Positions 37,305-63,700 of a DNA stretch of 64,000 bases are shown piece by piece. A model generated the notes under the pieces. That model did no database searches, had not been told where the DNA came from, and was given only the letters and a program-made list of their open reading frames with translations. The stretch lies in the NCBI GenBank assembly GCA_002269645.1, contig NIVC01000210.1, forward strand, positions 25,469 to 89,468, given 5' to 3'. Source of the stretch: Macrostomum lignano (Eukaryota). Within the stretch, counting starts at the first letter, position 1, and each line of letters opens with the position of its first letter. The translations under genes and the position numbers were made by a program.

Positions 37305-39831
37305 TCAGGGTACAAAGCGACGCAGAATCTGCCTGAACGGCTCCTCAGGATGGCCTCTACCAGCGGCCGAGAACCTCCCAGTCGGTCGAAGGACGCCGCT
37401 AGGCGTGAGTATCGTCGAGTCGCCGTGCACCGCCTCTAGAAACGGTCGCTCCATCTCGTGTCCCAACTCTGTCGCTTTTAGATCGAATTCCTGACCGGAT
37501 TTTACCGGCGGAGACACCTTCGGCGTCTTAGTCAACGAATTCAAGTTGTGAAGTCCTCGACGATTAAGTCTGTTGAAGGCGACGCTGGCCACTTTTAAGT
37601 CGCCAGTGTCCAGAGCTTCGCGCAACTCGACAGCATCGGCAGCCGCGGAAGTTGACAGGGCAGCTCCGCGCGAGGAATCCGCCATCTCGGCGGCCATAGC
37701 GGAGAGCGCATCAAATCGCTGCCGCTGATGCTCCAGGGCATCGCGACAGTCGGCAAAGAGGCGACTCCACTGCTGCAGAGCCGACTGGCGCTGCTTGGCT
37801 GACTGGTTTGCCGACTCTGCCGCTCTAATTAAAGTGCTGGACTCCTCCTGAAAGAAAATTTGACAAGTTGACATGTAGAACATGAACACTAATTGCAGCA
37901 ATATCCGTTGTAAACCGTTGCTTTGTTAAAATTTGAGCGAAAAATGTTAGTTTTAGTTTTAGAACTTTAGTTTTATGTAATAATAATTAATTACCTCGTT
38001 CACCTGCCCAAATAGGCAGATGTGCAACCGACAGCTCAGCCGCAGCTATTGCGCGGCGCATCTGAAGGCTGCGTACGGCTGTTCAGTCCAAGGACTGGGG
38101 AGGGGGGGGTCGCCACACGCACCCTCAATTACCCCAGCTAATGCTGGCACCCATTTTACAGCTGGGTGAACTGAAGCAATGCAGAGTTAAGTGCCTTGCT
38201 CAACGACACAAATTGTTCCGAGTGGGTTGAGAATCGAATCGAGGATCGACCTTTCAGTCGTGAGTTTCGACGCTGTAACCATTAGGCTACAACCCCTTTG
38301 TTGCAGTTTATTAATATTTGTTGTTACTTTGGTAAAACAATAGGAATCGGAAATCCTATTATAGTTTAGAATTTATAGCTTTGCATACGAGTATAAGTAG
38401 CAAACTACGAGCATAAGGTATAAATACGGTATTCCACCCAAATAATTTTTATTGTCAAAGCTGTCAATCAGTTATAATTGTGTTCCCCGTGTAAAGTCAA
38501 CAGATCATCAAGTACTCGTAAAAAATATATGTAAAGTCAGCTTAATGAAAGCCAATCTTAGATTCATGAAAGGTCTAGAAATGGAGGATCAAGGCTGAAA
38601 GCATTGCAGCAAACCTGGGAGAAATCCGAATGACCATATTTTTTAAGGATTCAAAATGGTCTAGCGCTTATTAAGGTATTCAATCGCTGTTTATTAAAAA
38701 AGTGTTTGTTATGCTACTGATTGAGGGAAATACCAATGAAAGAAAACATACGGCTATTGATACGGATCGAACTGCTACAAACCGATGACTACTTCTACCG
38801 ATTGATCTGCTACAAACCGATGACTACTTCTACCGATTGATCTGCTACAAACCGATGACTATTTCTATCGATTGATCTGCTACAAATCAATGACTACTTC
38901 TACCGATTGATCTGCTACAAACCGATGACTATTTCTATCGATTGATCTGCTACAAATCAATGACTATTTCTATCGATTGATCTGCTACAAACCGATGACT
39001 ACTTCTACCGATTGATCTGCTACAAACCGATGACTACTTCTACCGATTGATCTGCTACAAATCAATGACTATTTCTATCGATTGATCTGCTACAAACCGA
39101 TGCCTACGTCTACCGATCGAGGACTAATAAATTTAAACAACTATAAAAGATTGAACGACCGTCCAGCAATCACGCGCTTTCGTTAAACTAACTCTGAACG
39201 TTTTAACTTACGATTATAACCCACCTTAAATCGCATCTGATCGTTAGCGTAATGCATCTCGCACAGGTTCCGATCGCAGTGCTCGCACCTGGCAAATACC
39301 TGCTGCAGACAGGCACAGTTACCGGCACCCTCTCGAGCGTCGCATTTCGCGTGATGAAGCCACTGCTCCCGCCGACGCCAGCTGTCTACCACGCCGCGGA
39401 CGTGAGGATTCTCCAGCGGACGATCGACCAGACGCTCGCGACAAATCGGACAGCGGGCCACCTCGCCAGACGAGCGACATTTGGTTGCGATAGCCTGGTG
39501 ACATCCGCGGCACAGAGTGTGATGACGGCTGCACACGAAGCACGGATCAACGAAGGTGCTCAGGCACACTGGGCATTTCAGCTCCTCTTCGAGATCTTTG
39601 ACTGCCGGAATCGAAACGTATTTTTGCATTTAAATAGACAGTTTCAAAACTTGGGCACTTTGCTCAGGTTTGTTGCGTTTTAAGATTGATTCAATTTGAT
39701 TATAGTCGACCGTAATACCGAAAGACTTAATTGTTACAATGTCATAGGTTTGAATTTTTACAACAAACAACTTTACAATGCAGAAACAACAACTGAGATA
39801 ACTTACAGGTTCCACTTTCTGCAGACATCAT
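37305..39831 (-). CDS. TRIM-like gene 5, ~314 aa
   Basis: Exons 39831-39807 (MMSAESGT, phase 1), 39601-39225 (RING + B-box-like), 37847-37305 (coiled coil); frame continuous; intron 2 contains a SINE and the 35-bp repeat. Confidence 0.8.
37978..38296 (-). mobile_element. SINE family 1, copy 3 (intronic)
   Basis: Head GGGGTTGTAGCCTAATGG on minus strand; core-like segment; TAA-rich tail. Confidence 0.8.
38765..39118. repeat. 35-bp minisatellite (GATCTGCTACAAACCGATGACTACTTCTACCGATT), ~10 copies
   Basis: Directly visible, head-to-tail without spacers. Confidence 0.95.
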
Positions 39832-41134
39832 CGCAGGCCTAGTCATAGTCCTTCTTTATAGTCAAGGTACTTTAGATTGAAACAATTGCAAGGTTGAGTC
39901 AGTTGCAGGAAAAAGTGTCACCTCAACAAAGATGAAGCTCTTCACATGGCCTGAACGCTTTAAGAAGAGGAGGCCTCTTGTGTTCTCTGAGCAGACAGAA
40001 GTTTAGTTCTCACTCTGGTCTGTACACTGGGAATATAGTACATTCACTTACGAGTACAGCTGGGATAGGGCGGACTAGAAAGAGATTGCAGCTCAGTGAG
40101 TATATATGGAGTACAGCAAAGGTTTGCGAAGCTACACTGCAGACACCTCAGACTGTACGCCGGCACGGAAATTGAAATGTTTATTGTCTGAGACCGTTGG
40201 ACTGTACTTACTCGGAATGCCTTATCAAACTATGAAAGATTACCGAAGTAATTCAGGAAAAAGCGCTGAGTGCAATTCCAGGCACTGAGAGATAATATGA
40301 ATTCAAAATAAATTTTAACCTTTTTGCTAATGACAGATGTTTCGTATCCACTCAGTTACTATAAATATGCAGTACTCCGAAGTACGAATTCAAACTATGT
40401 TCTGGAAATGCCAACAACTGCACTACCGCCAACTTCATTCTTTTTTGTGTCTTTAATCAAACTTTACCATTTTTAAAGTCTATCAAAATAGATAGTAATA
40501 TTATATTCTGATGCCACACTTTCGAGGACATTGACTCACAATTGACTCGCAATGTGGCAATGCGCGGAATCAAACAACTTGTCGAGGTGCATTATAGCGC
40601 ATAATATCGGTATAACTTTTGGCTTTTAATTTAATCGCTCTATTTTTTAATGGAAAGAAACATTTAAAAGATTCTGACAGAACAAAGCCATGATACCCTG
40701 CTGTATGTATATTCATACTGTATAAACAAGAAATTAGACAGGGAGATACAACTGTAGCCATCTATGTTTCGCATTCATGGAGGTGTGCAAATTGTAGATT
40801 CACTCTGAAAAATTACTCGTAGAAGCTTCCTAGGGATTCAAATTATCAATATTATTCTACGAAAAAAGGAGTTTATATGACTGAATCATCATTCGTCAAG
40901 CTTGTTTCTGTTTCTTTTCAGAAACATGTTCAACGGGATGTGAAAGACTGATCGAAGCTTATATCTTTATAAACGCCGGCTATGACAAGCTGTATCAAAT
41001 ATGAATTAGATAGTACTCGTATTTTTTAAGAATAACGACACCCAGAAGAAAGAATAATAGTTGAAAAAACCAAACTCAACACAAACGTCAGAAAGTAGTT
41101 CTCCGTTCATCAATCACAACTAATTCTGAATCAT

Positions 41135-62600: not shown

Positions 62601-63700
62601 TGTTTGAAATGCGACTAAAATATAGGCAGCTCTGACCTGTTTGTCAGCTTCTCGTTGGCTTCTCGCAGAATATTCGCCTCCTTGTTGGCGTCCTCAAGCG
62701 CGTGCTCCAGCTCCATCAGTCGCCGTCTGGTTGCCTGCGCCGATCCGGCGCTCTCCTTCATGCTCTCGCCTCGCGCTCTCGAGCTCTCAGCTCACGCTTC
62801 ATCCGCTCCAACTCCTCTAGGAAGCCGCGAGTTCGTCTCCACTGTCTCGCGCATCCGCTCCTCGTGCTGCTCGCAGCGCGCCTGCAGCTGCTCAATGATG
62901 GCGGACTTTTCGCGTAGCTCACGTTGTAGGCGAACCTTGTCGAGATCTTCCTGCATGGCTGAGCGCTTGTCTGTGCCGGCCTGCATGCGAGCCAAGTCCA
63001 ACTCCGACTGAAGGTCCTGCGTCAGTTTTTTGACAGTTGAACGAATCGGTAATTGTCCTAATAAAATTTGAATAGCCTATAGATACAAGTCAAAAGTAAT
63101 TGCGTAATTGGTTTTTCTTTCCGTGTTAAATAAAATGGCTCGCTATCCTACGTGAAGTACTCAAATGATGCTGTCACTACAAAATGACTTCAATTCAAAT
63201 TTTAACAAATCAGTATTGAAAGAGCTAGTATAATAAAAATTATTAGTACTTTCTTGTCTTAATTTTCTGTCTCACCTGTATCCGCCTCTGGTGCTCCATC
63301 TCCTGAGCGTACAACTTGTCCTTGAGTGCATCCAACTCAGATTCCAGGCGCTCGTTAGCCATCTGCAGCTGGGTTCGCTCGTTGCGCATATCTTCTGAGC
63401 GTCCCAGGCTGCGCTGACGCTGATCCCGCTGCATCTGCATCGACTGTTGCTGCTGCTGCGGTGGCTGGTAAAGGACTCGCGTGTTGGGACCTCCGCGGGG
63501 CCGCGCTCGACCGCTGGCAGTCCGAGTCTCTCTGACCAGCGTTGCCGCCACCCGGCTTCGCCTGCTGCAGGAGCGACAGCCGCTGCCGCAGGTTCTCAGT
63601 CTGCTTCTCCAGCTCGGCATTGCGCAGCTCAAGTTTCACCACCTGATCGGTGGCGCGCAGCTCCGCGGCGCTGGCGCCGTTTTGCACTTTTAGGGCGCGA
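56648..63700 (-). CDS. RPGRIP1L: RPGRIP1L / Fantom (MKS5) ortholog, 5'-incomplete
   Basis: Exons ~63690-63276, 63016-62637, 62173-61927, 61213-60838, 60489-60158, 59670-59074, 58912-58409, 58316-58166, 58071-58009, 57878-57210, 56769-56648. Recognisable motifs: LLDIRAARIRKLERQLRDVAYG; C2N (GENLVELHV, FCTWPFY, QYVVKVDDSFLHY); [26 protein letters not shown]; C2C (PYCSYKFFD); RID (EETETPVSL). Apparent indels in the two 5'-most exons. Confidence 0.93.
56872..57143 (-). mobile_element. SINE family 1, copy 4 (last intron of RPGRIP1L)
   Basis: Minus strand TTGAGCAAGACACTTAACTCTGCATTGCTTCAGTTCACCCAGCTGTAAAATGGG; head GTTGTAGCCTTAGTGG. Confidence 0.8.
59860..60100 (-). mobile_element. SINE family 2, copy 2 (diverged, RPGRIP1L intron)
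   Basis: CACACAGGATGTACAGCGGCC...AGGCATGTACAC...GGGGGGTTGG...AATTGCACGA is colinear with 48020-48125. Confidence 0.65.
61600..61690 (-). mobile_element. Degenerate tRNA-like SINE head
   Basis: Minus strand AGCTCAATGG (A-box-like) ... GGTTCGTTTCC (B-box-like); single copy in the window. Confidence 0.35.

Follow-up and report, generated by a model that had tools for sequence, protein, structure and literature searches.

A RING-type gene ending in a diverged RPGRIP1L RID lies between a local TRIM-like gene family and an array of RID modules in Macrostomum lignano

TRIMCyp genes, which are TRIM5-cyclophilin A fusions present in owl monkeys and macaques, acquired their cyclophilin part as a retrotransposed, intronless cDNA from a distant gene. 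The Drosophila gene Sdic is a chimera of a different type; it was made from adjacent duplicates and then tandemly amplified, so that fusion came before amplification. The gene discussed here, T7 of the flatworm Macrostomum lignano, lies in a 64,000-nucleotide stretch of DNA ("the window"), which is the final 64 kb of the 89,468-bp contig NIVC01000210.1 (assembly GCA_002269645.1). The N-terminal 256 residues of its product come from a local TRIM-like family (the T family), and its C-terminal ~190 residues are a RID, the C-terminal domain of the ciliary protein RPGRIP1L. RIDs are type II C2 beta-sandwich domains that bind protein (RPGR) and do not serve Ca2+ or lipid binding (PMC4519163). We put a probability of about 0.7 on T7 being a lineage-specific chimeric gene that was born by local RID amplification, inversion and in-frame fusion.

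T7 and its position

The window DNA is eukaryotic, with introns and a GC content of ~44%. The genes of interest run along it in the order T5(-), T6(-), T7-RID(+), RID modules a-e (all -) and RPGRIP1L(-). T6 and T7 are head to head, with T5 lying beyond T6, and T7 and module a are tail to tail with 1,154 bp between their stop codons (46539 and 47694). A prior reading made from the letters of the window alone (the sequence-only reading) had claimed this order, these orientations and a tail-to-tail spacing of ~1.1 kb, all of which the coordinates bear out, and its observation of a chimeric gene at the junction of the T genes and the RID array is confirmed. Its inventory needs some correction. The five RID copies that it saw on the minus strand are there as modules but do not amount to five genes (e and d form one annotated gene, and c, b and a are unannotated); its seven RING/B-box/coiled-coil (RBCC) modules correspond to seven T copies, two of which are defective (T2 by truncation, T3 as a pseudogene with stops in frame); and its names TRIM5, TRIM6 and TRIM7 can be kept only as local ordinals and do not denote orthologues of the vertebrate genes. 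The parts of T7 are as follows.

43997-44015, 44553-44902, 44996-45830 and 46403-46539 (+): the four exons of T7, encoding 446 amino acids; exons 2-4 of the splice model match PAA87951.1 exactly
43997-45394 (+): RBCC-derived part, made up of exon 1 (43997-44015), the RING/B-box-like exon (44553-44902) and the helical part of exon 3 (44996-45394), which ends in 'LDGIYG'
45395-45400 (+): fusion junction as placed by the T5/T6/T7 alignment, inside exon 3; the ligase part and the RID are not separated by an intron
45401-46539 (+): RID, made up of an exon part (45401-45830), a phase-1 intron (45831-46402) and the last exon (46403-46539, including the stop codon)

When the RING open reading frame (ORF; 44579-44968) is spliced in silico to the long ORF (45014-45898), the product is 97% identical to a M. 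lignano UniProt entry, and the gene is PAA87951.1/PAA67346.1 at NCBI. The annotation that holds it was built from RNA-seq transcript assemblies (PMC5730564), and T7 is transcribed. Its 446-codon ORF is unbroken in three sequence versions, and since the ligase part and the first RID exon lie within a single exon, mis-joined gene models cannot explain the fusion. The public annotation records no Pfam domain for the T7 protein, and the RID is unrecognized there.

Window positions 33997-56539 are 100% identical to NIVC01000210.1:59465-82007. The M. lignano assembly is redundant, with 180 Mb in blocks at least 95% identical (PMC5730564), and a second contig of the same assembly, NIVC01001491.1 (the sister contig), has the same genes in the same order at ~98-99% identity to the window. 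Because NIVC01000210.1 and NIVC01001491.1 agree, local misassembly is ruled out as the source of the arrangement. The T7 coding sequence is identical in the two contig copies, as are its introns and flanks (43500-47000). This segment is 100% identical to sister-contig piece L001 9504-13000, and the neighboring DNA differs by 1-2%; the cause may be a recent gene conversion, but also identity by descent or an effect of the assembly.

The sequence around the junction is informative. T5, T6 and T7 have motifs in common up to 'L[ED][AG][VI][HY]G' ('ERPFLEAVHG' / 'AEQVYLDGIYG'). Past this point T5 and T6 continue for 35-40 residues to a stop codon, and in T7 the RID begins two residues on in the same exon. 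The homology of T7 to module a ('VERVCHIGISTV' vs 'VSRHCDIAISTV') starts at most two codons from the exon-1 acceptor of module a. A splice-mediated join followed by intron loss and a breakpoint at the exon edge both fit this junction equally well.

RIDs of the window

Six other RIDs are encoded in the window, namely that of RPGRIP1L and modules a-e, and each module consists of two exons, the first of ~135 amino acids ending in 'FP' and the second of 30-45 amino acids containing 'G[ST]I.[IL]S...P.LL'.

56648 to at least 63726 (-): RPGRIP1L, with Pfam C2-C2_1, C2 and RPGR1_C in this order; tblastn of PAA67348.1 is colinear; cut by the contig end
57633-57210 and 56769-56648 (-): RPGRIP1L RID, two exons
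53841-53433 and 53329-53213 (-): module e, RID-homologous, part of the e-d gene
53109-52648 and 51799-51675 (-): module d, RID-homologous, part of the e-d gene
51675-53841 (-): e-d gene, one annotated gene for a 370-amino-acid two-RID protein with RPGR1_C
50920-50506 and 50136-50002 (-): module c, with its own ATG; Pfam RPGR1_C E 2.6e-9; unannotated
49920-49423 and 49333-49193 (-): module b; Pfam RPGR1_C E 1e-5; unannotated
49116-48718 and 47788-47694 (-): module a, distal member of the array, without its own ATG; unannotated

By comparison with these, the C-terminal ~190 residues of T7 are a strongly diverged RID. A hidden Markov model (HMM) of the six, from which T7 was left out, covers the entire domain (T7 residues 259-437) with a score of 63.8 bits; shuffling the T7 domain 2,000 times gave at most 13.5. 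An HMM built from non-Macrostomum RIDs only does not detect T7, which accounts for the failure of the Pfam model to do so (see below) and points to an origin within the flatworm. In blastp searches the T7 RID matches modules d (5e-11), a (1.6e-9), c (4e-6) and b (1e-4), and pairwise E-values between local RIDs are as low as 5e-68. Sixteen columns are invariant in the full-length RID alignment that includes T7. In a 17-sequence alignment T7 has several characters that set all Macrostomum RIDs apart from the RIDs of other animals: the Cys of 'C.V.I' is present, the 'PG' loop is followed by six inserted residues, 'DYS' replaces 'VD', the loop preceding the central strand is shortened, and the last exon carries 'LP.LL'. 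The profile match and these shared characters reject the idea that the T7 C-terminus is an unrelated C2 domain. The motif 'ETETP.SLP.PRPG', which nearly all other RIDs keep, has been lost. A profile of all seven RIDs (T7 included) matches the RPGRIP1 RID structure 4QAM_B with E 9e-11. The ligase part and the RID of T7 were modeled separately, the latter without its last exon; the AlphaFold2 model of RID exon 1 (17-row alignment) has a pLDDT of 81 and is beta-rich with seven long strands, which is consistent with a C2-type fold.

Pfam RPGR1_C matches the RPGRIP1L exon and modules b, c and d above threshold; modules a and e alone do not reach it, and isoform P0002 (e exon 1 plus module d) has an RPGR1_C match in two stretches. 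Splicing of e exon 1, e exon 2, d exon 1 and d exon 2 reproduces exactly the 370 amino acids of the annotated gene, and UniProt A0A1I8J8Y7 is an isoform of it that skips e exon 2. Canonical phase-1 GT-AG sites allow modules c, b and a to be spliced together as a 560-amino-acid ORF with three RIDs, in which the donor of b exon 2 joins module a in phase 1; module a, the only one without its own ATG, can be reached solely through this donor. It is therefore possible that c-b-a forms one gene. Many M. lignano mRNAs are trans-spliced (PMC5730564), and so the acceptors that immediately precede the module ATGs could alternatively serve trans-splicing. Among 1.84 billion representative proteins, a profile search found none that contains module b or a. 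The module c RID exon is 67% identical in amino acids and 75-79% in nucleotides to that of RPGRIP1L, and c stands nearest to the RPGRIP1L RID and is the youngest of the copies.

All of the module ORFs are intact in both contig copies. Taken together, modules a, c, d and e differ between the copies by 13 synonymous changes in 356 sites and 10 nonsynonymous changes in 1276 sites (dN/dS ~0.2; module a contributes 2 and 1, respectively), and module b differs by an in-frame 6-nt indel. With intact ORFs and a low dN/dS, the RID modules look like coding sequence under constraint. When module b exon 1 (49920-49423) is compared with L001 15902-15423, the substitutions and the 6-nt in-frame deletion cluster in the last ~60 nt, the rest being 99% identical. 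Within the module a intron, a ~350-bp segment (47885-48238) has an extra copy between T5 and T6 that is present in the sister contig only (L001 5578-5929); this is probably a small mobile element whose insertions differ between the contig copies.

RPGRIP1L and its paralogs

The gene at 56648-63726, the likely source of all of these RIDs, is the M. lignano RPGRIP1L ortholog. It has Pfam matches to C2-C2_1 (E 1e-19), a central C2 and a C-terminal RPGR1_C (E 3e-13), and its upstream exons give weak, sub-threshold matches to coiled-coil families such as Rootletin. On the sister contig, the next gene past RPGRIP1L (L003 1159-2460) is annotated, intronless and encodes a 433-amino-acid Ser/Thr-rich protein that lacks Pfam domains. 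Besides the RPGRIP1L gene of the window, M. lignano has at least two more RPGRIP1L-like paralogs (P0005 / P0022-24 and P0021 / P0004), and thus the donor gene family itself has expanded in this species. One of them is a 1,016-amino-acid protein with Pfam RPGR1_C only (no C2-C2_1 or C2 at E<=0.01), and the other is of the partial P0021 type. P0021 (UniProt A0A1I8FUE8) is a partial RPGRIP1L-like protein whose gene is neither in the window nor in the flanks of the sister contig; its locus was not found, and a search with P0021 returned its own cluster only.

The T family

The other half of T7 derives from the T genes, the seven copies of which include, besides T7 itself, the following.

13353-14392: T1, T-family copy
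20938-21691 (-): T2, truncated, without RING
23479-24250 (+): T3, pseudogene with three in-frame stops in the helical exon
26513-27515: T4, T-family copy
37305-39846 (-): T5, annotated, 319 amino acids, RING / B-box-like / helical; RING exon 39225-39629, helical exon 37305-37847
41135-42375 (-): T6, RING/B-box-like exon 42037-42375, helical exon 41135-41680; frames intact, unannotated; an ATG exon was not found

Identity among the T genes is 26-43%, and they form a flatworm-local family. The RING/B-box exon of T7 is 43.6% identical to that of T6 (tblastn), and T6 is the sole paralog matched by the T7 helical exon; the RING/helical part of T7 belongs with the adjacent T5/T6 subgroup, with T6 the closest. 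T5 and T6 both end in a short tail without a Pfam domain and represent unfused members of the recipient family. T5 differs by nine synonymous changes and one nonsynonymous change between the contig copies.

The RING pattern C-x2-C-x10-C-x2-H-x3-C-x2-C-x14-C-x2-C is invariant across the family. Among proteins of known structure, the T7 RING matches that of TRIM21 (phmmer against PDB, E 7e-10) and is TRIM21/25-like; a model of it matches 6FGA in Foldseek (E 5e-6, TM 0.82, rmsd 1.4 A). Pfam RING models stay below their gathering scores on T7 (best E 1e-4). At the place of a B-box, the cluster C-x8-C-x7-C-x-H-C-x4-C-x2-H-x3-[HD] is invariant in the T family, HMMER alignments extend through the B-boxes of TRIM21 (5OLM) and TRIM72, and AlphaFold2 pLDDT there is 64-80. 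The T-family profile is colinear with TRIM72 residues 5-207 (RING, B-box and the start of the coiled coil; E 1.2e-6). The family can fairly be called TRIM-like, its RING being clearly so and its B-box atypical.

Placement of the T7 RID

The RIDs of T7, RPGRIP1L and all five modules share a phase-1 GT-AG intron that falls at one and the same codon, immediately behind 'FP'; its length is 572 nt in T7, 440 in RPGRIP1L, 103 in e, 848 in d, 369 in c, 89 in b and 929 in a. The retention of this intron at the same codon in every copy indicates that they were copied from genomic DNA and are not retrocopies. In a DNA dot-plot, similarity is confined to coding exons (RPGRIP1L RID exon 1 vs c 75-79% and vs d 71%; exon 2 of several modules in short matches of 61-84%), and no non-coding similarity is left anywhere in the RID array.

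Neighbor-joining (NJ) trees were built under 12 settings (three MAFFT modes by two gap filters by two distance measures), with 200-500 bootstraps. The Macrostomum RIDs including that of T7 are monophyletic in 100% of the NJ bootstraps, and within them modules a, d, P0021 and T7 form one subgroup. T7 joins module a in 74-97% of bootstraps across the 12 settings and P0021 in at most 14%. Ten placements of T7 on the NJ backbone were also compared by maximum likelihood (ML), using a BLOSUM62-derived reversible model with four gamma categories; log-likelihood differences (dlnL, with standard errors) and resampling-of-estimated-log-likelihood (RELL) supports were as follows.

T7 sister to module a (best ML placement): dlnL 0; RELL 0.71-0.73
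T7 sister to P0021: dlnL -2.9 +/- 3.2; RELL 0.10-0.13
T7 sister to module d: dlnL -3.7 +/- 3.4; RELL 0.06
T7 outside the clade of local RIDs and P0021: dlnL -5.8 +/- 3.8; RELL 0.006
T7 basal in Macrostomum: dlnL -9.1 +/- 4.7; RELL 0.005

The T7 RID thus arose within an already amplified RID family, and its sister is most likely module a, which is adjacent to it and inverted. The branching order of the modules does not follow their physical order, c being nearest to RPGRIP1L, and the tree does not tell whether a was copied to T7 or T7 to a.

Origin of T7

From these results we infer the following order of events. The RID-coding 3' end of RPGRIP1L, two exons with their phase-1 intron, would have been amplified downstream into five modules. 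The distal module would then have given rise to a copy lying in reverse orientation next to the 3' end of the last T gene, through an inverted duplication or through a duplication and a subsequent inversion. Finally, the inverted RID copy would have been joined in frame within the last coding exon of this T gene, displacing the short native tail.

The sequence-only reading had put forward a similar history, local RID duplication followed by an inverted duplication into the 3' end of a TRIM paralog. The local origin is supported, and an inverted duplication is indistinguishable here from a tandem duplication plus a small inversion. It had also placed donor, amplified intermediate, recipient family and product within 27 kb; all four are found there, with the qualification that P0021, whose gene lies outside the window, falls inside the group of local RIDs. 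The domain groups neither with an unrelated C2 family nor with a distant locus, either of which would have spoken against that reading, and lies inside the Macrostomum RID clade, so that in this respect the reading has survived. The dot-plot that it had suggested, run on DNA, gives the similarity between coding exons described above and no inverted repeat between T7 and the RID array.

Several observations weigh against this account of T7. Nucleotide similarity, an inverted repeat and intron similarity were each searched for between T7 and module a, and none was found above chance; in the absence of non-coding or inverted-repeat similarity the events must be old, and their record survives at the level of protein sequence and intron position only. 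No remnant of the displaced T5/T6-type tail was found in a search downstream of T7. ML differences within the a/d/P0021 group are about one standard error, so that the pairing of T7 with module a is favored and not proven. P0021 nests among the local RID copies, which means that the history of the family is not wholly contained in the 27 kb. Pfam RPGR1_C (PF18111) has no match in T7 even at E<=10, and neither has Pfam zf-B_box at E<=10. In Foldseek the T7 RID model without its last exon gives no significant match; the best is an RPGRIP1L C2 domain (2YRB, E 0.013, TM 0.38), synaptotagmin C2 domains come next, and 4QAM is outside the top 50. Because the introns and flanks of T7 are as identical between the contigs as its coding sequence, the two-copy comparison is uninformative on selection on T7.

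Of the other explanations, two concern where the RID of T7 came from. It might have been copied from a RID gene elsewhere, such as the paralog encoding P0021, with the proximity of the array being coincidental or secondary. The placement of P0021 inside the local RID clade in spite of its absence from the window and the sister-contig flanks would agree with this, as would the second rank of T7 + P0021 among the ML placements and the similar tails of the two proteins ('LPCLL...SEV' in both). However, T7 + a is preferred in every NJ setting and by ML, module a is the immediate tail-to-tail neighbor of T7, and the P0021 locus could itself be nearby, past the contig ends; an outside source is thus unlikely. 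Alternatively, the direction could be reversed, T7 having gained its RID first from a d-like copy and module a being a later inverted back-copy that was picked up by splicing from b. The lack of an ATG in module a alone, and its dependence on the phase-1 donor of b exon 2, would be explained in this way, and a sister relationship within a subgroup comprising a, d, P0021 and T7 is silent on direction. On the other hand, module a is short-branched and keeps more of the consensus than T7 (e.g., 'PRPG'), as expected if a is an ordinary member of the array and T7 its fast-evolving derivative, and a back-copy requires an additional step, all of which makes it improbable.

The remaining two explanations carry still less weight than these. 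T7 could be an artefact of assembly or annotation, or a decaying read-through product, and not a working gene; its protein has no recorded Pfam domain, its RID has lost the most conserved RID motif, and the identical contig copies give no measure of constraint on T7. But the same structure is present in two independent contigs with the ligase part and RID in one exon, three sequence versions all carry the unbroken ORF, RNA-seq assemblies underlie the gene model, and AlphaFold2 folds the RID part with a pLDDT of 81, so that this is very improbable. Retroposition of an RPGRIP1L or RID mRNA has a precedent among TRIM genes in the cyclophilin A of TRIMCyp; for T7 it is rejected, with hardly any probability left to it, since the donor intron is retained at the same codon (45831-46402) and neither a poly(A) tract nor a target-site duplication is seen. 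Birth of T7 from its neighbors by local RID amplification, inversion and fusion is accordingly the preferred reading.

Possible functions

In other TRIM proteins PRY-SPRY or NHL domains bind the target. By analogy, T7 may tentatively be pictured as a RING E3 ligase that dimerizes through its helical region and uses its RID as the target-binding module, the target being RPGR, another RID partner in the transition zone or something new. As T7 has lost 'ETETP.SLP.PRPG', the specificity of its RID may have changed. The free-standing RID proteins (the product of the e-d gene and possibly that of c-b-a) could compete for the same partners. A more speculative and rather doubtful extension is that Macrostomum possesses a RID toolkit in which two- and three-RID proteins act as competitors or adaptors for RPGR-type partners and the T7 ligase ubiquitinates a ciliary or new target, with the Mytilus B-box-RID proteins described below as an independent parallel. 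If so, TRIM-like proteins would have recruited the RID for substrate recognition more than once. RNAi is available in M. lignano. Transgenesis is also established in this species (PMC5730564), and the two together should make the ciliary function of the RID-bearing ligase and of the RID-only proteins directly testable.

Other features of the window

Seven long and highly regular tandem arrays are present at 463-1230, 2715-3407, 7342-8501, 38761-39117, 42449-43499, 51902-52520 and 54709-55464, with periods of 9, 9, 16, 35, 4, 20 and 15 nt, respectively. Several of them lie in introns (T5, module d) or between genes, and one is a 1-kb (ACTA)n array between the heads of T6 and T7. The ORFs at 3503-4393(-), 4930-5841(+) and 10300-11235(+), of ~300 amino acids each, are intronless and paralogous to one another; all three have a hydrophobic N-terminal leader and conserved cysteines and no Pfam match, and they may represent a lineage-specific secreted protein family. 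The remnant of an LTR-retroelement pol gene at 18110-19340(-) contains RT_RNaseH, Integrase_H2C2 and rve in broken frames, coincides with a GC peak of 52% and adjoins the truncated T2.

Comparison with known systems

The profile search of representative proteins gave 16 matches at E<=0.001, among which the M. lignano gene is the sole one to combine a RING with a RID. A word-indexed database search with the RID alignment gave no matches. A literature search on M. lignano RPGRIP1L, these genes, RPGR1_C and RID-TRIM fusions found nothing relevant. The combination RING / B-box-like / helical / RID was found in no other protein, and T7 thus appears to be an undescribed example.

The RIDs of the window are homologous to that of RPGRIP1 and RPGRIP1L (4QAM chain B; PF18111). 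Known proteins carry one RID, at the C-terminus of a large transition-zone scaffold, but in the window the domain also occurs in free-standing multi-RID proteins and on a RING ligase. A partial parallel is found in Mytilus edulis, where proteins with Pfam zf-B_box and RPGR1_C (CAG2186541.1 and at least four paralogs, automatically named 'RPGRIP1L') likewise have a RID outside RPGRIP1L on a TRIM-type zinc module and form small paralog families, some members of which are adjacent on a contig. Unlike T7, they have no RING and no long helical region, are only 241-255 amino acids long and carry a canonical RID (Pfam 162-167 bits). The Mytilus RIDs group with those of non-flatworms, so this was an independent event.

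Chimeric genes are usually found after the intermediates have been lost; here the donor, the RID array, unfused T paralogs and the fused product survive within ~26 kb. Duplication followed by fusion is well known, and the T7 locus is therefore a clean example of it and not a new principle. As in Sdic, local duplication of neighboring genes produced a chimera, and the locus also underwent tandem amplification; in contrast to Sdic, amplification of the donor domain appears to have preceded the fusion. The likeness to TRIMCyp is in the product, a RING/B-box/coiled-coil gene whose native C-terminus has been exchanged for the binding domain of another gene. The two differ in the route, since at the T7 locus the donor is adjacent, the amplified intermediate survives, the RID would have arrived as an inverted genomic copy with its intron, and the junction lies within a coding exon.

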